This document shows positions 48,073 through 61,247 of a DNA stretch of 64,000 bases, in pieces. Both the position numbers and the translations under genes were made by a program. Source of the DNA: Leidyana gryllorum EB-2025a (taxonomy: Eukaryota; Protista; Apicomplexa); NCBI GenBank assembly GCA_048772705.1, contig JBLWGC010000185.1, positions 70,436 to 134,435 on the forward strand. The letters run 5' to 3'. Numbering within the stretch: position 1 is the first letter of the stretch; each line of letters starts with the position of its first letter. Below the pieces are notes generated by a model. That model saw only the letters and a program-made list of their open reading frames with translations, was not told where the DNA came from and made no database searches.

Positions 48073-51000
48073 TCATGCAGTATTCGCAAGGCTTTCCAGA
48101 AACTTCTCGTACCGCACTGATACTTCTATCACAGTGTCAGAAAACTCACGAGGACAACGACTCCTCAGCTCCCGTAAATACTGCTGTGCTCGACTCGTAT
48201 CGATCGCATAAGGATCCTCCCTACAGTACACCTCAACTCCCAAATCCATCTCCAAATGCCGATCCTCCAAGCTGTCCATTAGCAACGCACGACTTAGCTT
48301 ACTTCGCCCGCTCTCAAACGATTGAGCGTCGGCTGCTGTCGCCAATACGCGGTCACGGGGCTCAGCCCGCATTGGGTCCGCTAATGAACTCAATAACCCC
48401 TGTAGCCCCAGGAAGAACGGCGGACATTCACAAACCGCCACATCCTCTACCAACACTCGACCACCCACAGAAAATACCCATGGCCCGCATGCTTTAGCCT
48501 CACGTCGACGGTCACTTATTTTCAAAAGTGTGTCGATTCCTCCTGTCGTGTGCAGCAGATAATCCCATCTGTGACAGTCCTCAGTTGTCAACAATACTGG
48601 AGTCTGACGGACAGCCACATCAAATGGCTTGCAATCAGCCGCCTTTGCCGCTGACCCATCACCACCACCCTGTATTCTCTGTAGCCGGCTATCCACAGTC
48701 TGCAGCACTGCCCCAAAAGCGCCCGTGATCTGATATACCATCAAAGACGTCATATAAGCCGTCCTTTCACGACTGATTTCGCCACTCTTGATGCATAAAT
48801 ACAGGCACATCTGCGAAATAGCAATAGCACACACGTGTGTGTCTCGTTCCAAATGTCCATTCTACTTACCTGAAGACATGCGAGCTGCTTTTGACGGCTC
48901 AACCGACGCATAGACGCAACCAATTCGTGACACTTGAGCTTCCAAAGCTTTTCGTCTCCTCCTTCAGTTAACATGTCTTCCATCTTCCGATGTACCAAAT
49001 CGATCTCTATCTGTCCTTGAAGGTGCAGATAGATCAATGTTGAGGGAGGAAGATTCCGAACCGCACTCAATTGCCCGTCCTGTACTTCCCAATAGTGCTG
49101 CATCACCTTTACATCCTTCTTGTCTTTCAGCTTCTGAATTTGAGACATCAGGAGCGCTACGCTTCCCAGCACCGGCTCGGAATTTCCATAATCTCGAACC
49201 ACGGGATAGACGAAGTTCTTGAGAATCCCCGATAGACATTCCAGAACGGCTTTGCGGGACAGTTGCGCATAAAGACTCATCTGACTTTGAGCCACCACAG
49301 ATTCCGTCCCTGTTTCAGCTTCTTTCACCGTCACCATGGCTCGTTTCAGTGTCTGTCGCCATGCCAGAGGCACTAAACGAGCGGTGGCATTCTCGCGGAG
49401 TGACCGCTCCACCTCGGAGTCGTCTTCATTATTCACGGTGTGCTGTGCCAACAGGACCAAACTTGTCAGCTGGCGAATGACAATGATCTCATAGATCCCG
49501 TCTGGACCACCCTCCGGAGCAAGATCTGATTGGTTCCGAGGTTCTCGGCAGGTCCTGAGCAACGATGCCAACCAGTCCCGCGGGGGAAGCACCAGGGCCA
49601 AGGGTAAGAGGGACAGCATGACAAAGTGTGCTCTCAGCCGACGACTCAACGGATGTGACCAAAAGGCCAATGATACATCACTCAAGAGCGATGCCAACGA
49701 ATTGTCCTTGGGGCAGTGCGCGATACACAGCTTCCACAATGCGATGATTGCATTTTCAACAGAAACATCACTGGGATCTTTGATGTGAGCAGTGATGTAC
49801 TCGTCGGCGAGTGGGGCTAAGATCTGTCTCAAGTTCAGATCTGGCAGCACAGATACGGTGGTTAAGGCTTCCAATAGAGTAGTGCGCTCCGCAATGCCAG
49901 CCCCACTGTCCGACTTGAGGCGAACCATCGCCCATCGGGCCAAATTGTCGTGAGGGAGCGAATCCAATGTCAGTGAGGGATCTCTGAAGCGTCCTTTGGA
50001 ATGTAGGATCGAATAGTGACTGACTCACCGATAGCATCGCAGGACTTGGTGCAGCACTCCCAAGAAATGTATACCAACTGGAGAGGCATTCTGCATAGAA
50101 ACTTTGGTCGCTTCTTCTGCAGCAGGACCGGCAGAAGCGCCCGCCCGGAGTGAGAATGCTTTGCGGGTATTGGCGAGCCAGAAGATCAATGCTTTCCCGG
50201 CGAGTTCTCTCTGCGGTCCGACTGGGATCTTCGCCATTGTGAAGAAGACTTGAATGGGCTGTTGAAGATGATTTTTGAGATCACCCGGTTGCTGCAGGAG
50301 CGATGGCAGAATGGTCTGAATGCCCAACAGCGAGAATGCGCCGAGGATAGGACAGAGTTTCTCGCTTTCCACAGCGAAACTGCCCAAATTCAATTCCATC
50401 AAAGCGTTGAGTTGAGAGAGGGTCAAAGACCGCACTTTGTTGCGATCATTGACATCCAGTGAGATTGCCCCACCCAACAATTGGCACCGCGCCCAATACC
50501 TCCAGGCTGCGCTCTGTGCGACTGGAGCCATCGCGTCCATCGCTTCGTCCATATCTTGAACAGTGGCTGGACAAAGTGATTAAAAGAGCGCAGCTGAAAA
50601 GACTCACCAGAACCCAGTTGGGTGAGACGGGGCAGTACAGCAGCGGTCCAGATAGCTCCGTGATCAGCCTGGTCTTTCAAGTTGATTCCCTTTGCCGTTT
50701 CTGCGATTTTACGCAGTAACGCGGGGTCGAAGGTGGTATTGAGGATGTGGAGATCAGCATAGGCCAGAATGACGTACTGCAGGGGCGCAGCAGAGTCTTG
50801 GGCGATGAGCAAAAGTACGTCTCTGATCGCTCCCGCCTCCGCGGGATGACTGAACCCTTTGAGAGCGGCTTCGCTGGCGATGCCCAGCGTTCCGGCGGCC
50901 AGGATGAGGCGGCGGGGTGGTGATTCGGGTCCAGTGTGGAAGGCAACGTTTCTCTGTCGCAGATTGCAGATAGGCTGTACAGCGTGTCGCCGGAGGCCTC

Positions 51001-54000
51001 CAAAGGCAGCGACTGCGTCAAAACAGGTGTTGGCGTACTCGGGTACCCCGTTGACGAGGTGGATGGTGGATAGCACAGTGGCACTAATGGCGAAGACGAA
51101 TCCCGAGGTCATAACGGACTCGGTGCGGTCGAGTTCTGGGGCCGACATGTTGTTGATGGCTGCCTGCATATAGTCCAGGAGTCGGCCTGCGATATGAGAC
51201 GCAACGGCGGCGTTGACGAGTGCCAATCCTCCAAAGGCCAGCAGTATTTTGACCAGCGAGTCCATATTCTTTGATGGCGACACAGTGGGGTCAGCATTGG
51301 CCTGGTGCTGGTTGTTGGCAGATTTAGCTGTGGGGGATTTGACTGTATCCCACAAGAATGAGTTGAGATAGTTGTAGATGTCCCAGGCGGACTCTGTGAC
51401 ACTGGTCATTGTGCAGGCGCTCAGATATCTGCGGTGTTGGAATGATTTTGTGGGGACATCAAAGTGTGGCTCACCGAGCGAAGAGAGGGCGGAATTGGTG
51501 TTGCACTGCGGTGTACCATAAAAGTAGACAAGTTTCCCATTGCGCTGGGCATTCTGCATTGTCGCGGGCGTCACTGAGAGTCATTGGAGCCATTGGTGCC
51601 GAGTTGAAGACGATACGTTTCAAGAGGGCTTTGAATCGTTCCTTTCGCTCGGCTGTTGCCCCAGCGGCGTTGTCTCCGCTGCTCGTTGGCGGGCTGTAGA
51701 GGACCAATTCTGCGAGCGGAATGAGGTCCTTTGAAGGGGAGACGGCGAATCGCGGGTGTAAGGCGCGGCTGGACATCCCAATCAACGGGTGGTTGACGTT
51801 TCCCACTGTAAGAGGGCGGTGGGTATGAGAGTGACGCTATGGAGTGGCTCACCTTTTCGGAGTCGGTGACCGATGGCGTCCCGATGCACTCCCATTAATT
51901 GGTGTAGGGCCAATGTGGGGATATCCTGAAGGGTTATATCCCCGTTGGTAAGAAGTTTGAGAAAGTTGGATGGAGTCTCCAGTCCAGCGTATGGGCCCAG
52001 ATAGATGGGCTGAGAGAGGTAAACCCCTAACGGATCGTCGCTGGCGTCAGCCAGAGCCAATCGATGGGTTTCTCTGAGGAGGGGTAGAAGGGTTTGAACC
52101 ACAGCTGCTCGACGTCCACTGTCCCAGTTAGTTGTGAGCCATGGAGTGAGGGTTTTGAGGACATCGTCCTCAATCCAATCGCCGTCGTCCTCCGGCAGCG
52201 GCTCATTTTTGACGACTTTCAGAAAGCGGGGCAAAGTATTACCGTCGACAAATTGGCTCAACAAACTGCTCAGCCACGTCGAGCCCTTCACGTCTGTGAC
52301 TCGCTGCATCCACTGGAGGCCGGGGCGCAGAATCAGCATATCGTAGAAATCTTTGGTTTGGGCAGCCCCGACATAGAGAAGGCGGTTCGCCAGTCTCAAT
52401 GCCAGCGCCCGGTCCTTTTCACACAGCTGTGAACCCCACAAAGGCGCCAAGAGGTTCTTTTGAAATGTCGAATACACAGAGACCGGCTCGATCTCCGCGG
52501 CTTCGATCAGATACGAGATCCCCCGATCTTCAGCGGTCACCAATGCACAAAACTTGGAATAGGGCAATCCATCTTGAGCAAACAGTCTCACGCCCATCAG
52601 TCCGGCCAAACTCTGTGATTCAGTGCCACCGCTCTCCTTATTTGCACGAGTGATCGCCTCGCAGGCAGAGAGGACCATTTTGTAAATGGTCTGTGAAAGA
52701 TAAATGATAGTGACCAACGGAGAGGTGAACTCACAGGAGCCAATTGGCGATCTCTGGAGAGACTGGCCAAACAGATTAAGCTCACGATATCCTTCTGATC
52801 TATCGCTCGTTGGTGGAGAATCGGAGCGTTCTCCGCCAGAGCGAAGGCCGCCGGACTGGCCTTACTCAAGACGATCGGACGATTTGTCTCCAAATTAGCC
52901 ACACACACTGGCTGCGAGGTCCAGGCCAAAAGCTGTGTCATAATACCCAAACACAGGGGAGACGAGCGGTCTTGGTGGTAAAATAAGAGCCCTCCCAAGA
53001 GCGCTCGCAAGATGGGACTGAAAGGTGCGCCCGTCAAGGGCGACAACGCGTGCCAAGCTGCAACATTGTCACTCTTGCTCAGACGGAATAAAGGTGAAAA
53101 TAAGTCCAACAGGTCGCAAATGAGCGACAGCTCGGGCGTAGGGCAATAGTGGCCCCATACTGCGTACCACGTTTCCAGCGGCTTTTGCGATAACACGCAC
53201 TCTGATTTCTCGCTCAACCCTTGCAGTGCTTGGACTTTTATGAGCTCCAGTTTAGCCGCCACAGCGGAAGCTGGGAACCGCTGAAGCATTAATCGACTCA
53301 GTACCAATGCCAAACTGGACATCATCGCCACATTTGTGGTCTCCAACGAAGAAGCCATTATCTGCAACCCGTGCACTGCTTCCAGTGCCAACAATGTGTC
53401 TTCTTCGGGAATGGGTTGACGAATTAGCCCGTCCACCAGACGCATCATCAGGGCCGCTCGCATATTGTCTACTGCCAAGACTTCAACAGAGTCATGGGTG
53501 ATCGGCTGTAGCATGGGAACAAGATGCGACCGTGTCAATCGGATTAGGGAGGCCAATGGTTGCGGATCACCGAAACTTAGGAGCTCCAGAACCAGAAAGA
53601 AGATCCGGCGTGATGATTCAACGCGGATTTGTTCATCCACGATCCCCTGGAGACACCGAAAGAGTGTGTGGCACACACGTTCGAGCTCTGTGGGTCCTGC
53701 TTTGTTGATGCATTCAAAGTAATTGAACTTGATACAACTCCTGAACAGCTGGAGACGCGACACTTCAGAGGATAGATATCGAGTTACGCTCTCGAAAACG
53801 TGCGGAAAGGACGGTCTCTGTCAGACAAGTTGTGTTGTTCTGTGATCATATCATTGATGATGGCTTACATCCCGAACAGCCAAGGGCAGTAGTTTGTCGA
53901 GGAAGAACTCGATCAAGAAGGTTTCAGCAGCTGCATTGCGCTCGCCTCCTAGACAGAAGGAGGATCGCAGATCCGCCCACACGAAGCCCGCAAGAGTTCG

Positions 54001-54575
54001 GTCGGCGATGACCAGCCTCTCGAGGAGATAGCAAACTTCATCTGCTTCGGACTTGATGGCGCCATGATGGATGGCGTGGAGAGCTCTTTTGACGAAGATT
54101 GAGATGAGCGGACAGAGGTTGGGGGCTTTAGTGGCGACTAAAGCCGTGAACTCGTTCATGAGGGTGCGAAAGGGCACTCCATTGGCCTCCACGAGCCTGA
54201 ACAAGCCATCAACATAGAGCTGTGCTCTGCCTCCGAGCGTTGCTGTACTGGGGCCGGTTGCGAGTGAGGCCACTGGGAGAAAGGAGGAGAAGGTTTGGGT
54301 GGGAGATACTATCGGGTCTTACATCGTCCCATGAGGCGGGCTTGCAGCATTTTGGCGTTGGCAGCATCCTTTAGGACTCGTGTGTCTTCATTGACACATA
54401 GGGCGAGGAGCTTATTGATAGCGGACTGAGCGACCATAGGAACGACCGATAGATGGAGGTTCTCATCGCAGCTCCAGGATGTGACATCGCCAGTGATAGA
54501 GCTGATGTCTTTGACAGCATTTTCCTGCCATTCGAGTCGAGTCCAGGCCTCTTTGAAGTCCTTAGGTACGGACAT
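48073..54575 (-). CDS. Large (~2000 aa) Leu-rich alpha-solenoid (HEAT/ARM-like) protein, multi-exon
   Basis: A chain of long minus-strand ORFs separated by short GT-AG introns, with helical Leu/Ala-rich composition. The family was not identified. Confidence 0.6.
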
Positions 54576-54678
54576 TCAAAAAGCTGAAAAGGGTCGTGGG
54601 CTCTGTGCTTGGTATACGGACCGGTTCAACATGTACAGCGATGAGGGAGTCTTTTGATTGTTGTAAGTTGTCCGAAAA

Positions 54679-55374
54679 ATGCCGAAACGAGCAGCGGTAA
54701 ATCAGCCTGAAGGCGGAGAAGGTACGAAGCGAACGCGAAGTGGGAGCAAAGACATAACCCCACCCGCCAAAGAGAAAAGGGTTACGCCTGTGAGGGGTGC
54801 TGTATTGCCGATTCTGACTGCCAACAAAGTGGATGGCCAAGGCTGCACCATTGCTCGAATATTCAGATTAGGCAATGTCGAGTTTGTCCGGAATGATGTG
54901 GAGGAAGACTACAATGCGCGGCATTCCACAACCGGCACTTTGCCCATGTTGGAAGTTGCAGGCCGAGTCTACACCGAGTATCTGGCCATACTGCTGTATG
55001 CGGCCAACCGAGCTGGCCTGGAGCCCGTTGACCCTCTCGATCAGATGAGAGTGGTGAACATTCTGCGGTACATGGAGCGTCTGTGGCCCATCACCTGGAA
55101 GGCTATGGCTCCGGCGGGAACGCCCTCACAACGGGAGGCGGTCGAAGAGCTCTGCACGCACCTCAAAAAGCTCGACAGATTAGTTGGCGACGGAATGCGA
55201 GATGGCTATTGTGTCAACGGCAAATTAACAGCCGCAGACATTGCTATTTGGGGCTGTGCTGTGTTCTACCAGGTGAACCCCGCGCAGCTTCCTATCCCGA
55301 AAGTGTCGACAGACTGTCCCAATCTGTGGGCAGTACGTCACAATGTGGAACAGAAACACCCCGAAGTCCCATAG
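54679..55374 (+). CDS. Glutathione S-transferase-fold protein (atypical active site)
   Basis: GTLPMLEVAGRVYTEYLAILLYAANRAGL (cis-Pro loop/helix 3) and YCVNGKLTAADIAI (N-capping box). Intronless. Confidence 0.8.
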   Translation: MPKRAAVNQPEGGEGTKRTRSGSKDITPPAKEKRVTPVRGAVLPILTANKVDGQGCTIARIFRLGNVEFVRNDVEEDYNARHSTTGTLPMLEVAGRVYTEYLAILLYAANRAGLEPVDPLDQMRVVNILRYMERLWPITWKAMAPAGTPSQREAVEELCTHLKKLDRLVGDGMRDGYCVNGKLTAADIAIWGCAVFYQVNPAQLPIPKVSTDCPNLWAVRHNVEQKHPEVP

Positions 55375-55582
55375 TTACTACGCCGTCGTCGTCATTGTGG
55401 TGGTGTGTGTAGATGCGTGTTATCGGTGGTGCTTTGCGCGACATACTGGAACCAAAGATTTGATAGTGAACTCCTTTGCCTCAAAATGTGCGATCCAACT
55501 CGCGTGAATCCCAAATTGTGCAGTGACACCCGAAACGGACGCATGTAATGTGTCAAACTGTGAATACCGAAGAGAATCCAAT

Positions 55583-56141
55583 ATGTGTAAGTGATGAAAA
55601 GAGACCGATTGATATGTCTTGTGTGGCAGCGGCATACGAAGTAGAATTGATCAATTTCGAACCTCAAGAGATGACCGCTTTGGTCAGAGACTTCCACGGA
55701 CACTATAAGGACGCTCTGGATGAGCGAGCTAAAGTCCAGCAAGACTTTGCTGGAAAGCCGCATCTGGAACAAGAGCGGTTCGTCATGCTCATGTTCGACG
55801 ATCCCCATCAGTGTCCCAAGGACAAGTGCCTCTCATCAGTCGGATATGTTTGTGGCTCCAATGCACCCGAGAACGAACCCACGCCCGAGTACAAGAAGAA
55901 AGACCTCAAGGGCGCCTTCGCTCGAGTGAAGACCAACAAGAAGAAGGCTGAGGATCTCGGTGAGATCCAATGCTACCTGTGGAAGACTTATCTGCCGGAG
56001 AACAATATCACCCCTCGCACTGGAGAGGAAGATTTCTGTCTACAGATCGTCCATACGGGCGACGGGGATGTGGAAGTCCTCAATGAAGTACTCGTGCCCA
56101 TAGACGCTTCCCACGTCACCGAGAAGCAGAAGAAAGAGTAG
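55583..56141 (+). CDS. GyrI-like small-molecule-binding protein 1 (no signal peptide)
   Basis: ATG T|intron 55587-55629|CG gives MSAYEVELINFEP...FHGHY...MFDDPHQCPKDKCLSSVG...YLWKTYLPE...EVLVPI. Confidence 0.75.
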
Positions 56142-56225
56142 ACTGCGCCAAGGGGAATAACTGTTCATAAACGAAGCATACACAAGGAGGCTCTTTCATC
56201 AATTAACTCAATACTCCCAATGTAG

Positions 56226-56590
56226 TACTTTCTGATTCTACCATACCAGGCTTATGACTGATTGTGAAGGGTAACCGACAGGATTGAGTTGAATATTAAG
56301 CGCCATGACTGGCCGTAAAGCCTTCGCGGTGGCATTAAAGTCGTATCTTGCGGTTTCTCTTACCCGCAATCTTTGCCACACACGCGTGTGCTACTTTCGG
56401 ACGATGGGTTTAGGTGGGTCAACCCATGCTACAAGACTCATTATTGTTACAATTGGCACGGAATTGGTTGCCGAACCGCAATCCAGTCTATCTACCTGCA
56501 CACTGTAAGGACATCGGCGGATGTGTGACGATGTCCCGGAAAGCGTACATTGCAGCGTGGGAACGAGTCTGAGTGCTAATCGGTGTTTTT
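56226..56590 (+). ncRNA. Candidate structured non-coding RNA (unassigned)
   Basis: Unusually long spacer with several perfect hairpins, box C-like GTGACGA (56525), box D CTGA (56569) and T5 (56586). The strand is a guess. Confidence 0.3.
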
Positions 56591-56683
56591 ACGGTGTCGT
56601 TACGGCGTCTGGAGAGAGCACAGCGCGATGTGTGGGTGTGGAAGGTCTCGTTTTTCGATGTCCCTGTGAGGGTCGCCCGGGGT

Positions 56684-57435
56684 ATGAAGAGTGTGTTTAG
56701 CGCGCTGATCGGTCTGGCGCTGGCTTACGAGTTGCCTGAGTGGCTATTCAGAGGCGTTGAGACACCATGGCGACAGTTGCCGCGGGTGATCGGAGTGGGT
56801 CAGGACGAAGCATGTGAGTGACTGGAAGTCGATCGACAGGTCTGAATGACATGGGTACAGTTTCGTTACAGAAGCCGCGCGTTAGGAACTACAAGGACGG
56901 CATACCGTGTGTGTGCAGTTATTCGGCGGAGACAAGTTTCTCGGAGGTATTATTGCGAGCGTCTCACTTGAAGCACTTTGCGGCTTTGAATGGGTTGTTG
57001 GCTTCGACATCGCACCCACGTCGGTGGTTCGTGCTGATGGACGTGCCATTGCCGAGCAATTTGGATCCCTACAGTATGGACTTTGAGAGTGTGATCTGTG
57101 TGGACATTGACAGTGTGGGGATGAAGCGTTCTGAGTTTCGTTACGTTCGGAACGACACTGACATTGGTTACATTGGTTTCGGTAACTATTTGTCGGTATT
57201 ATTTGAAGGGCCGCGGGCGTCTTTACCGAAGGCGATTCATCAGCTGCTTACATCGACGGAGGTGGTTGACCGGCGATTGGATCGTCACCGTCCGATAATT
57301 GAGGAGGTGTCTCCCCATTCAATGACAAAAGCATTGAGTCGTCATGTTGTACCGGCGGAGCGAGTGAGTAGCGATGTGCCATTGCCGTGGATTCATATTC
57401 CGTCTCGTTCGGTTTTGTGGATACCGATCCTGTGA
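56684..57435 (+). CDS. GyrI-like protein 2, secreted, two exons
   Basis: Signal-like MKSVFSALIGLALA, then GNYLSVLFEGPRASLPKAIHQL...RPIIEE...VLWIPI, matching the second GyrI half. Confidence 0.6.
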
Positions 57436-57456
57436 GACTTTTCTTCCTCCGAGTCA

Positions 57457-58536
57457 ATGAAGACTTGGTGGTTGGCTGCGCTGTGCTCATTATCGGTGCA
57501 CGGGTTTGAGGGAGGGCACTTTCCCTTTAACCTGTTTCACGGCCGGCACAGTCGGAAACCCCACCCGAGCAAATCGTCGCCGAGTCAGAACCGCAATATA
57601 ATTGAGGATGATTTGGGACGTCAGCAGGAGGTCTACTTTGCGAATTTCAGTGAACCTTTACGACTTGCGCTGTTGCGTCACGATGGGCCCGCTGAGCGGA
57701 CTCTATTGCTGTTCGCTCGCGTGGAAGCATTGGCACGCGAACACAATCTATTGCCTCCCGGGGAGACTCCCCGTTTATTTGGTTTATATTGGGACAGCCG
57801 AGGGGCGCCTGAGTTGAAGAAGGACCGGTCGGCGGCTGGTGTGTTGGTCCGGACGATTCCGGATCACGTCTCTGAACCTGACCTTCTGTTTGTTGAGACT
57901 CGGAGGGGCCCACATGTGGTGATGCATCAACACGGAGAGCACAGCAAAATCGGAACTCTGTATTCGACGATTTATAACAGAGTGTTTGACAAATGGAATC
58001 TCGAAAATCGCACTCAGACTTTGGACGGCGACGACGATTATGGGGCCGACAGCGACGATGAGGCCCCCTATGGCGAGGAGGAGAGGCGAAAGTCGTCTGC
58101 CAAGAAGAAGCCGTCATCGACAAAACACGGCAAGAAGCGGTTGCTCAAAAAGGGGGCCACCAGCTCCCCGACTCCGGCTGCAACGACGACGTCCGCGAGT
58201 TCGTTGACGAGTTCGACGTCGACGACGACCACCACCACAAAGGCGACGTCAAAAGGAGGAAAGAAGAAGGAGAAGAAGACAACGACGTCTACGGCCGCCA
58301 CTGGCGGCGACGGGGGTTCATCGGACGCGGGGGGAGCCGAGCCAGAATTGATTGATGAGGAGGACAGCAGTGAGTCGGCCGACGATCGTCAGACCATTCC
58401 GGACGAGGCTCCCGTGTTGGAGGAATATGGAATGGTCCCTTCGACCGCTATCGCGTGGTCGTCAGAGTTGGTGACAGTGTTATATGTACCGATAGCCTCA
58501 ATGCCCCCGAACGTCACTCCAGAGGCATTGAGCTGA
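57457..58536 (+). CDS. GyrI-like protein 3, secreted, with low-complexity insert
   Basis: Signal MKTWWLAALCSLSVHG, then LRLALLRHDGP...FGLYWD...GPHVVMHQHGEHSKIGTLYSTIY...[insert]...APVLEEY...ELVTVLYVPI. Confidence 0.75.
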   Translation: MKTWWLAALCSLSVHGFEGGHFPFNLFHGRHSRKPHPSKSSPSQNRNIIEDDLGRQQEVYFANFSEPLRLALLRHDGPAERTLLLFARVEALAREHNLLPPGETPRLFGLYWDSRGAPELKKDRSAAGVLVRTIPDHVSEPDLLFVETRRGPHVVMHQHGEHSKIGTLYSTIYNRVFDKWNLENRTQTLDGDDDYGADSDDEAPYGEEERRKSSAKKKPSSTKHGKKRLLKKGATSSPTPAATTTSASSLTSSTSTTTTTTKATSKGGKKKEKKTTTSTAATGGDGGSSDAGGAEPELIDEEDSSESADDRQTIPDEAPVLEEYGMVPSTAIAWSSELVTVLYVPIASMPPNVTPEALS

Positions 58537-58671
58537 TTGACTGACTGTCTGTGATGAATGGGTGAGAAGGAGGGGTGAGTGACTCAGTGAGTGACTCAGT
58601 CAGTGACTCACTCAACTTGGCTGACTCACTCAACCTCCCTTACTCACACTCACTGCTCGACGACTCGTATT

Positions 58672-59688
58672 TCAAGCAGCATAGGCGTAGAGTGGTTCTT
58701 CTTCACCGGGGAGGGCAGTGTCGTCAGTGGTGGTTATATATCCAGTCGAGTCGTGTTTGTTGAGGGCGGTGGAGGCGTTGTTGAGGAGAAGGGGAGTGGT
58801 TTCATCGACGGAGACGGGCATTCCTCTTTGTTCTTGGAGTTCGCAGTATTTGGATAGAGAGACGAATCTCCAGCCTTGGCTGGTGGCTTCGGGTATGAGT
58901 TGGGCCATTGCGTTATAGGAGTGTTCTCGGTCGTGTACGACAATGATAGCTCCGCTGTGGAGACGGTGTTTGACGAACCATTTGACAAAGCCTTCCTTCT
59001 TGATTTGGGCGTCCCAGGGGTAAAGGTCTCCGAGTACACATTTGTAGCCGTTGCGTTTGACGACTTGGAGCATCGCGTCATTGAACCATCCTGAGCCGGG
59101 CCTGAACCACTTTCGAGCGAGACGTGGAGCGGTATCGGTTGGCCAGAGTCTTTTATCGGTTTCCCGTAGCTGTCTTTCGAATTCCTCAATAGAGAGTTTG
59201 ATGCTGGGGAAGTCTCCCATCATGTGGTTTCCCGTCTCGCAGCCGATATTCCATATTCTCCGCTGCACTTCTTTCCGATACGCGCCGGTGATGGTGTTGC
59301 CCATAACCATAAAAGTTGCGGTGGCATTGTTGGCCTCGAGCAGATCCAAGTAGTCGGGTGTCCAGTGGCTAATGGCGTCGTCGATCGTGAGGGCGACGAC
59401 CTTTTCGATGGGCGGTTCGAATTTCCAGAGCACATTGGGCCACTTCTTCGCTGCACTTTTGATGAGCCAACGGTGTTGCAGAAACCCTGACATTGCCAAG
59501 AAAAATGCAACGAACAATATAACCCCCACAACGATCAATCCAATAGTGCACCAATCCATTCCGTAATAGTCTTTGTTCTTGGAGGAGCGTTTCGATTGTT
59601 CTTTCGAGCGCTGTTCTTCAAAATCTCCCTCCGCAGAGGTCTCCGAACACGTTTTCGCCCTCTCAATGCTTCTCCGCGTTAAAACCAT
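58672..59688 (-). CDS. Membrane-anchored polysaccharide deacetylase (CE4/NodB family)
   Basis: Single N-terminal TM, then VALTIDDA, ATFMVMG, ETGNHM, WFRPGSG, YPWD and GAIIVVHD. Intronless. Confidence 0.88.
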   Translation of the reverse strand: MVLTRRSIERAKTCSETSAEGDFEEQRSKEQSKRSSKNKDYYGMDWCTIGLIVVGVILFVAFFLAMSGFLQHRWLIKSAAKKWPNVLWKFEPPIEKVVALTIDDAISHWTPDYLDLLEANNATATFMVMGNTITGAYRKEVQRRIWNIGCETGNHMMGDFPSIKLSIEEFERQLRETDKRLWPTDTAPRLARKWFRPGSGWFNDAMLQVVKRNGYKCVLGDLYPWDAQIKKEGFVKWFVKHRLHSGAIIVVHDREHSYNAMAQLIPEATSQGWRFVSLSKYCELQEQRGMPVSVDETTPLLLNNASTALNKHDSTGYITTTDDTALPGEEEPLYAYAA

Positions 59689-59694
59689 TTTTCG

Positions 59695-61247
59695 ATGTCC
59701 TCAGCGGCACTCACTTTTGAGGAGACGGTGCTGAGAGAGCTCGAAGCCTTGGACGCTGCTGATGGACAACAGCAACCCGCCGCCCGCAACAGTAACGTCA
59801 TTGTCATCAGCGGACTGAGCCCCGATGCCACTCCCGTTGACCTCCACCGCCTATTCGCGCATCAAGAACCCCAACTCGTCTCGGTGGACATTGTCAAAGA
59901 CCCGGAAACAGGCCGCAGTGCCGGATACGCCAACATTGTACTCGAGTCACCCGAAGCCGCTGAACAGGCCATCGATGTATTGGGCGGAGAAGGCGCGCGC
60001 GTCTTAGTCGGGAATCACGGGTGAGACCACTGCACTCGGCTCTCTCTCTAAGTAACTATCTCCCTCACACTCGCAGGACGGGCATTGTGCGCTTCAGTCA
60101 GACGGCGAGTCCCAATGACTTGGACCATTACCATTTGTATATCGGAGATTTGGCAGAACCCGTCACCGAAAAGGCCGTTATTCAGTATCTCACTGACCTC
60201 TGGGAGCTCTTTACACCGCCCCCCAACTGTCCAGAAGTACTCAAGTTGGGACCCGTCTCCATCAGACTCCCCCGAGACCCCATCACACGAACCCCAATGC
60301 ACTTCTGCTTTGTCAAATTCGACTATCCCAATGTCCCACAGGTCTTATTGAGGCTCTATGAACAAATGGTGAGCGGCCGCAGCCAACGTGGCGACAAATC
60401 CAACGTGGCGACAAATCCAACGTGGCGACAAATCCAACGTGGCGACAAATCCACCCCCCCCTTGCAGACGGAAGAAGAGACTATGCCCAAGTTTCACGGC
60501 AAAACGCCAGTGATGCGCGAGCTCAAGCCCAGACCGCCAATGACTATCGAAGGCGAACAGCCGCTGTCCAAACAGGAGGCACCAATGTGGTCAAATACCA
60601 CAATTTGCGCGATGGGCTTACCCGATGATGCCAGTGAGGTAAGTTGGCGCAGTGCCACTCAATGCTGCCACACGCTGTGTCTCCCACAGAGAGACCTCCG
60701 GAAACATTTCGGAGCCTTCGGGGAGATAACTTCTGTCAAAGTCGCCGTCATGAAGCATTTGGCACTCATTCGGTTCCGTCAAAACGCGTGTGCACTCGCC
60801 GCAATGACCCAACTGGAGGGTGTCCCCTTCCGAGATCGGGTAAGTCACTCAGTCACTTTCAGTCAGACACACACACATTGTTTGTCGTCGTTCGGCTAAA
60901 ACTGTATTCGTTGTCCACAGATCATTCGTCTGTTCTGGGCGCGGTCGAAGAATCCGGTGCTCACCAAGGATCCAACTCAGGCCATGCAGGAGGCCGAGAG
61001 GGCAACTGCTGACAGGTTGGAGGCCGAACAGTGGGCGAAAGCAATGAAACCCCGGAGACGCGAAGAGACGGATTTAGCGGCTGAAAACTCAAAGAAGGCT
61101 CGAACCGATGCTCGCGACGCTGATTTGACCCCCGCCGAGAGGGCCAAATGGGCCGCAGAGCTGGTCAACTCGCTGACACGTAGTACAAATGTTCAGCCAT
61201 TGATCGCACCTCCGCCACCACCGCCCCCACCGCCACCGGCCACGTGA
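59695..61247 (+). CDS. Three-RRM RNA-binding protein, multi-exon
   Basis: IVISGL...TGRSAGYANI; LYIGDL...HFCFVKF; ICAMGL...FGAFGEI...ALIRF. Poly-Pro C-terminus. Confidence 0.8.
60383..60453. repeat. 17-nt perfect tandem repeat (CCAACGTGGCGACAAAT) x4 in an intron
   Basis: Units start at 60383, 60400, 60417 and 60434, inside the predicted intron 60369-60466. Confidence 0.95.

Follow-up and report, generated by a model that had tools for sequence, protein, structure and literature searches.

The question raised by this locus is whether five adjacent genes in the gregarine Leidyana gryllorum form one functional island at the interface with the host and its microbiota, or whether a family of small-molecule-binding proteins simply lies among other genes. 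The genes occupy positions 54679-59688 of a 64,000-nucleotide (nt) stretch of DNA (C185:70436-134435, contig JBLWGC010000185.1; hereafter the window) in a genome of 15.5 Mb, 237 contigs, and approximately 52% GC. All five open reading frames (ORFs) proposed by a first-pass annotation of the window were present at these coordinates; they encode a protein with a glutathione S-transferase (GST) fold, three candidate GyrI-like proteins (copies 1, 2, and 3), and a carbohydrate esterase family 4 (CE4) deacetylase. GyrI-like domains bind small molecules and are made up of a duplicated beta-alpha-beta-beta module. They are known mainly from bacterial drug sensors and sequestration proteins, and their eukaryotic forms are TEX264 and SOUL/HEBP. 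In bacteria, free-standing GyrI-like proteins sequester the compounds that they bind, which are hydrophobic, aromatic, or cationic. In this study, we read the locus as three GyrI-like genes that form an old, strongly diverged tandem array and whose products would sequester ligands, with the GST-like and CE4 genes as mere neighbours. The probability that we assign to this reading is roughly 0.55.

The secure member of the array is copy 3, which lies at 57457-58536 on the plus strand and encodes 359 amino acids (aa). Its product scored 31.7 bits against the Pfam GyrI-like model (PF06445; cut-off, 26 bits) over aa 66-185, and a scan of the genome with the same model returned copy 3 as the sole match, at 33 bits. 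Copy 3 is a GyrI-like protein, and its homology rests on this Pfam score; the structural model described below tests the compatibility of the fold. The domain is split into an N-terminal part (57595-58011, approximately aa 47-185) and a C-terminal part (58399-58497, aa 315-347), the latter aligning to positions 128-157 of the hidden Markov model (HMM). A disordered insert (58021-58386, aa 189-310) separates the two parts.

The structure of copy 3 was predicted using AlphaFold2 with an alignment (A2) of 63 sequences, composed of the copy 3 family and 60 Bacillota GyrI-like domains. The predicted local distance difference test (pLDDT) score was above 90 at approximately aa 50-185 and 320-359 and below 50 in the insert. 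The model was then compared with 48,161 PDB representatives using VIA-align. Sixteen chains had Z scores of 10.4-14.8, and the next row scored 4.4. All 16 chains were GyrI-like or SOUL/HEBP proteins and spanned the whole domain across the insert; they included STM3175, SbmC, BrlR, CtaZ, EcmrR, SOUL, Lin2189, BmrR, SAV2435, Cass2, p22HBP, Rob, and CTR107. The matches obtained with Foldseek in the PDB and the ESM Atlas were likewise all GyrI-like or SOUL. Predicted from an alignment that includes bacterial family members, the model has the duplicated beta-alpha-beta-beta (SHS2) fold. In A2, the second half of copy 3 and the segment after the insert line up with beta4-alpha2 and beta5-beta6 of the family. 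The insert, which splits the domain, lies within the alpha2-beta5 loop. E322 of copy 3 falls in the sole A2 column conserved in at least 90% of the 63 sequences, and both orthologues keep this Glu. A pocket Glu is highly conserved in GyrI-like proteins, such as E253 of BmrR and E185 of Lin2189 (PMC5684135).

The orthologues were found in an exhaustive phmmer search with aa 46-200 of copy 3, which covered 1.84 billion representative proteins and yielded no more than two true relatives, both from EukProt, namely P0001 (288 aa; E 1e-20; 40% identity to copy 3) and P0002 (263 aa; E 1e-13). One of the two is from the cockroach gregarine Blabericola migrator, for which the transcriptome source is PMC8051059. 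Both proteins are built like copy 3: a hydrophobic N-terminus is followed by a His-rich stretch and the N-terminal part of the domain, and an insert that is acidic and Ser-rich interrupts the domain at the matching position. Within the family, the C-terminal segment after the insert is 67% identical over 39 residues. A third protein, P0003 (2295 aa), matched a 28-residue stretch of copy 3 (aa 78-105) five times (E 2.6e-8) and is probably an unrelated repeat protein. Word-seeded homologue searches with aa 1-200 of copy 3, copy 1, and copy 2 returned none; as the same search missed the 40%-identical P0001, these blanks carry little weight. A scan of metagenome contigs for the copy 3 family found no relative, and a PDB sequence search with the family profile found nothing relevant. 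As far as can be read from these sequences, copy 3 belongs to a secreted family that is common to several gregarines, at least two species besides L. gryllorum being represented.

Signal peptides were judged from Kyte-Doolittle hydrophobicity and conservation only. Copy 3 begins with a hydrophobic, signal-peptide-like segment (aa 1-16), which is followed by a His/Pro/Ser-rich linker. Both orthologues also have such an N-terminus, and copy 3 is predicted to be secreted. The first-pass annotation had counted two secreted proteins; this stands for copy 3, and for copy 2 it holds only if a predicted 47-nt intron is spliced. The linker after the signal peptide (57520-57600) is rich in His, and aa 20-45 of the orthologues are more so, with runs of four to five His. 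Such a linker could bind metal or heme, or sense pH.

The insert of copy 3 comprises 122 aa, of which 20 are Ser, 20 Thr, 16 Lys, and 23 Asp/Glu. This composition looks mucin-like, and the insert may be glycosylated. A disordered insert so rich in Ser, Thr, and Lys would suit a mainly structural glycoprotein of the surface coat or cyst wall, in which the insert works and the GyrI-like domain is a scaffold. However, the insert is the part least conserved in length and sequence, whereas the GyrI-like core and the pocket Glu are conserved in three species; hence, we consider a structural role improbable.

A second alternative concerns the ligand. In this alternative, the GyrI-like proteins would bind heme or porphyrin in the manner of SOUL/HEBP; the secreted copy 3, with its His-rich linker, would serve as a scavenger or buffer of heme or tetrapyrroles in the insect gut, and the cytosolic copy 1 would act as their chaperone. 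SOUL and HEBP were among the structural matches of copy 3 (Z scores of 12.6 and 11.5; Foldseek E 1.6e-3 to 4e-3), and the His-rich stretch after the signal peptide, stronger in both orthologues, is consistent with such binding. On the other side, a search of the genome with the SOUL profile (PF04832) gave no match at E<=1, and bacterial drug-binding GyrI-like proteins scored somewhat higher (Z scores of 14-15), although the alignment used biases these scores. A conserved pocket Glu such as that of copy 3 is a typical feature of proteins that bind cations and drugs (PMC5684135). In our assessment, a heme-binding role of this kind is unlikely.

Copy 1 (55548-56141, plus strand; 197 aa, with the domain at approximately aa 29-190) is probably GyrI-like, as judged from profile and language-model comparisons of its sequence. 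Its Pfam matches to the GyrI-like model (E 0.03-0.04; 14.6-14.9 bits) and to Cass2 (E 0.02) were collinear and below the cut-offs. An HMM of our own was built from 69 bacterial GyrI-like domains and used as a single-family test, with 3000 shuffled sequences and 70 decoy ORFs from the window. Copy 1 was the best of all targets in this test (P 2.4e-5; aa 36-159 on HMM 22-131), and none of the 3000 shuffles reached its score. The three copies and the two orthologues all scored above every negative control. Among the 30 language-model neighbours of copy 1, 28 were GyrI-like (top score, 0.93; 197 shared features). The position of the pocket Glu seems to be occupied by Gln or Cys. A hydrophobicity check of copy 1 revealed no signal peptide, and the protein is probably cytosolic. 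A PDB sequence search with copy 1 returned nothing relevant. Scanning copies 1 and 2 against Pfam as half-proteins added no further match, and an HMM from the mixed alignment A2 brought no gain in sensitivity for these two proteins.

For copy 2, the exons were searched separately. Its P value against our own HMM was 0.012 (aa 107-131 on HMM 96-120; 13 of 3000 shuffles reached the score), and hhalign gave a P of 0.015 in the same region. The aligned stretch is the beta4-alpha2 segment (Gly-x-Tyr ... Gly-Pro, then a helix), as in bona fide members. Its 30 language-model neighbours included 17 GyrI-like and five Cass2 proteins (0.91; 183 shared features). By eye, a Glu-Glu pair appears to lie at the position of the pocket Glu. 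Pfam scans of copy 2 (the ORF, its halves, and the version from the alternative ATG) gave no match, and a PDB sequence search gave no relevant match. P0002, which is a certain family member, had no Pfam match either, and its P value against our own HMM was 0.0097, like that of copy 2. The Pfam blank is thus no evidence against the membership of copy 2.

The gene model of copy 2 was read from the sequence. As an open frame, copy 2 extends over 56818-57435 on the plus strand and opens with GTG; an upstream exon was added. Predicted exon 1 (56684-56813) supplies the start codon (ATG at 56684) and a signal-peptide-like hydrophobic N-terminus with a Kyte-Doolittle 12-residue maximum of 2.19 at aa 3. 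The predicted intron (56814-56860; 47 nt, GTGAGT ... ACAG) keeps the frame, with a GTGAGT donor at 56814 and the AG at 56859-56860. The introns of two neighbouring genes have GTRAG donors and a pyrimidine tract that the predicted intron lacks. Exon 2 (56861-57435; approximately 190 aa) contains the candidate GyrI-like domain. Through this intron, copy 2 may be secreted; alternatively, an in-frame, unspliced ATG at 56851 would yield a protein with no signal peptide. A model in which copies 2 and 3 form one spliced gene was rejected; only one GT..AG pair bridges the stop of copy 2, and this pair encloses 22 nt and leads into a stop codon.

The weakest link in the array is copy 2, and several observations weigh against a three-gene family. 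They would fit a locus in which only copy 3, and perhaps copy 1, is GyrI-like and copy 2 is an unrelated, lineage-specific orphan. Beyond having no Pfam or PDB match, copy 2 had an HMM score that was tied by one of the 70 decoy ORFs, a language-model recognition score under the reliability mark, and a single-sequence AlphaFold model of exon 2 with a pLDDT of 33, which was unusable. In sequence comparisons, it resembled neither copy 1 nor copy 3, nor the copy 3 family profile. For the array as a whole, neither BLASTP among the copies nor hhalign of the copy 3 family profile against copies 1 and 2 detected similarity, and it is fold, adjacency, and rarity alone that speak for common descent of the copies. 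Moreover, the alignment behind the copy 3 model held bacterial GyrI-like sequences, so that the model speaks for fold compatibility and is no independent discovery. Against the orphan explanation, the orthologue P0002 is equally without a Pfam match and has the same HMM P value. Furthermore, 22 of the 30 neighbours of copy 2 are GyrI-like or Cass2. A coincidental match to the family of the genes on either side is unlikely, and the stretch of copy 2 that aligns falls at the collinear position of the domain. On balance, an orphan is the less likely outcome, though not a negligible one. We are fairly confident that copy 2 is a family member because the genes on both sides of it are members of this rare family.

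The proposal of three GyrI-like genes with low mutual similarity is thereby retained in graded form. In the Pfam test, copy 3 lies above the cut-off, copy 1 lies below it, and copy 2 has no match; by our own HMM, copy 1 is probable and copy 2 is suggestive only. The divergence is real, and the actual level of mutual similarity is none detectable by BLASTP or profiles. Genome searches using the Pfam models PF06445 (GyrI-like), PF14526 (Cass2), and PF04832 (SOUL), each of the three proteins, and the copy 3 profile returned the known loci only. With no further copy detected, it is very unlikely that three genes of the same fold came to lie side by side by chance. The simplest origin is an ancient tandem duplication followed by extreme divergence; tandem paralogues can diverge until no sequence similarity is left while the fold is retained.

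An origin by horizontal gene transfer (HGT), which had been suggested for the cluster, was not borne out. Among the 1.84 billion representatives, no bacterial protein matched copy 3 at E 0.001. The GC content at third codon positions (GC3) of the five genes (0.58-0.64) is native in comparison with that of their neighbours (0.56-0.63). No close relative of the CE4 protein was found in 185,579 prokaryote genomes by a pattern scan, which covers close relatives only. Nothing supports a recent HGT, and a very old transfer is conceivable but equally unsupported.

The remaining two genes flank the array. The GST-like gene (54679-55374, plus strand; 231 aa) encodes a protein with a basic N-terminal extension of approximately 40 aa. 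Its Pfam matches were all under the cut-offs (GST_C_2, E 2e-4; GST_C_3, E 6e-4; GST_N_2, E 8e-3). In the PDB, its best match was the squid sigma-class GST 1gsq (E 6.8e-6), with approximately ten further GSTs at E<0.02. Judged by eye, Ala occupies the place of the catalytic Tyr of the sigma class, and helix 1 begins with a Cys. The annotation of this gene as a GST is weakly supported and holds at the level of the fold, and the apparent lack of the catalytic Tyr weakens the detoxification role proposed for it.

The CE4 (NodB-type) deacetylase gene (58672-59688, minus strand; 338 aa) is convergent with copy 3 and single-copy in the genome. Its product matched Pfam Polysacc_deac_1 (E 2e-15; 57.3 bits; cut-off, 23.1), gave partial matches to the NCBIfam PdaB, PdaA, PgdA, and NodB models, and had bacterial CE4 enzymes as its best PDB matches (down to E 8e-15). 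The N-terminus consists of a 45-residue basic and acidic tail, followed by one transmembrane segment (59482-59553, aa 46-69; Kyte-Doolittle 3.37). With the catalytic domain at 58840-59409 (approximately aa 94-283), the predicted topology is type II, with the catalytic domain outside the cytosol. The first-pass description of a surface CE4 deacetylase is confirmed by the family matches and the transmembrane segment. The motifs were defined according to PMC5855634. Motif 1 (TIDD, aa 101-104) aligns to TFDD of SpPgdA and keeps both Asp, which serve as catalytic base and metal ligand. Motif 2 (HMMGD, aa 155-159; 59215-59224) aligns to HSWSH of 2c1g and departs from H(S/T)xxH; the first His is present, Asp stands in place of the second metal-binding His, and Met in place of the Ser/Thr. 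Motif 3 (RPGSG, aa 196-200, within FRPGSG, aa 195-200) aligns to RPPYG of 2c1g with the Arg-Pro kept, and motif 5 (IIVVHD, aa 248-253) aligns to MHD of 2c1g with the His-Asp of the catalytic acid kept. The Asp of motif 2 could still bind metal, and the enzyme may well be active with an atypical metal site, which we flag here.

The CE4 protein probably deacetylates N-acetylglucosamine polymers outside the cell. The region C143:44799-52135 holds at least four GH18 chitinase genes in tandem (E 1e-39 to 2e-45; native GC), with fragments at the contig start. A Pfam search of the genome for chitin synthase gave no signal; this is a weak negative, made in six frames and exon by exon with controls silent for PF01644, and it counts on the unfavorable side of our interpretation. 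Given the GH18 cluster and the undetected chitin synthase, host peritrophic chitin is a plausible substrate.

The first-pass annotation had joined all five genes into one co-functioning, possibly HGT-derived island at the interface with the host and microbiome, in which the GST and GyrI-like proteins would detoxify gut compounds and the CE4 enzyme would act on chitin or the bacterial wall. The genes are adjacent with very short intergenic distances (21-173 nt), all five have small-molecule- or glycan-handling folds, and GyrI-like and CE4 proteins are commonest in bacteria. However, the searches recovered no bacterial match to copy 3 at E 0.001 among the 1.84 billion representatives and no close relative of the CE4 protein in the 185,579 prokaryote genomes, and GC3 is native. 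Short spacing is general in the window, as illustrated by the divergent CE4 (minus strand) and RNA-recognition motif (RRM; plus strand) genes, whose start codons lie 6 nt apart (59688-59695), and the GST-like protein seems to be without its catalytic Tyr. In a compact genome, adjacency alone is weak evidence of coupling. The interface island is mostly unsupported, and we hold it to be very improbable. Most likely, the GST-like and CE4 genes are real, native to the genome, and just neighbours of the GyrI-like array.

The setting of the cluster was also inspected. The window is gene-dense, and the neighbouring genes have short introns of approximately 50-56 nt. The cluster itself was correctly described as intron-poor, with one predicted intron across five genes. 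On the upstream side, a run of long ORFs (88-405 aa) extends over 48750-54575 on the minus strand; the gaps between the ORFs are short, and at least two look like short introns. This run probably represents one large multi-exon gene; a Pfam scan of its four largest ORFs found no domain. Downstream lies the gene of the RRM protein, with a 56-nt intron near 60022-60077 (GTGAGA donor). Neither flank of the five-gene cluster resembles an island boundary. The spacer between copies 1 and 2 (56142-56683; approximately 540 nt) is far longer than the other spacers of the cluster and contains a 67-aa ORF (56305-56508) that is not supported by any evidence. No match came from the Rfam and tRNA scans, which covered 54000-60500. 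The stop codon of copy 2 and the ATG of copy 3 are 21 nt apart on the same strand (57433-57459). Because the start of copy 3 is confirmed by its orthologues, either copies 2 and 3 share a transcript, or the promoter or 5' untranslated region of copy 3 overlaps copy 2.

For the tandem array, ligand sequestration is the likeliest mechanism, which we infer from known family members. The GyrI-like proteins of L. gryllorum would bind and sequester hydrophobic, aromatic, or cationic compounds. Gut xenobiotics, microbial toxins, and porphyrins are candidate ligands. Copy 3, and perhaps copy 2, would meet such compounds outside the cell, and copy 1 would meet them inside. Taken further, gregarines may possess a lineage-specific family of secreted, split GyrI-like proteins that, together with intracellular paralogues, acts as an extracellular sponge in the gut lumen; this extension is tentative, and we think it has a minor chance of being correct. 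If true, it would be a eukaryotic parasite version of the drug sequestration by AlbA/STM3175 and CtaZ, directed at gut xenobiotics, bacterial toxins, or tetrapyrroles. Should the secreted copy bind gut compounds, it would reveal a chemical means by which early-branching apicomplexans deal with the insect gut and its microbiota, and would add an extracellular, split-domain form to the GyrI-like family. A literature search found no paper mentioning both GyrI-like proteins and gregarines. The result is at the level of annotation, and it describes a variant of a known domain family and no new system.

The proteins can be placed among known systems as follows. The bacterial proteins SbmC/GyrI (1jyh), CTR107 and SAV2435 (5kax and 5kat), CtaZ (7zhd), and the STM3175/AlbA type (7r3w) have the same whole-domain fold as copy 3. 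The free-standing bacterial GyrI-like structures aligned to copy 3 with Z scores of 12-14.8 and a root-mean-square deviation of approximately 3 A over 146-154 residues. Like these proteins, copy 3 is a stand-alone domain with no DNA-binding fusion, and the pocket Glu is conserved in both. In contrast, the gregarine proteins are eukaryotic, with at most 20% identity to the 60 bacterial sequences, and copy 3 adds a signal peptide, a His-rich linker, and a domain-splitting insert of 122 aa.

The cyclopropanoid cyclopropyl hydrolases (Lin2189/YtkR7) also have the fold of copy 3 (Foldseek E 1.3e-4; VIA-align Z score, 12.3). Their subfamily is defined by E157 and E185 and by an aromatic cage of Y46, W85, W99, F154, and Y187 (PMC5684135). 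Of these residues of Lin2189, two (E185 and Y187) were located in copy 3 by alignment to the family consensus, as its Glu-x-Tyr (E322 and Y324). Among eukaryotic proteins, SOUL/HEBP, a branch of the same superfamily, have a fold related to that of copy 3 (Z scores, 11.5-12.6), with structural scores under those of the GyrI-like proteins proper and identities of 6-7%. TEX264 is a metazoan endoplasmic reticulum membrane protein with a GyrI-like domain (PMC7062751). TEX264 and copy 3 are alike in having an N-terminal hydrophobic segment that leads into the secretory pathway, followed by the GyrI-like domain; the disordered region comes after the domain in TEX264, whereas it lies inside the domain in copy 3. 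TEX264 was not among the structure matches of the copy 3 model, and the exhaustive sequence search returned only the two gregarine-type orthologues and P0003. Finally, the CE4 protein shares the NodB domain and motifs 1, 3, and 5 with SpPgdA (2c1g), PdaC (6h8l), and the fungal chitin deacetylases (2y8u and 2iw0), and differs from these structures in its HMMGD motif 2, its cytosolic tail and anchor, and an identity of approximately 25-30%.

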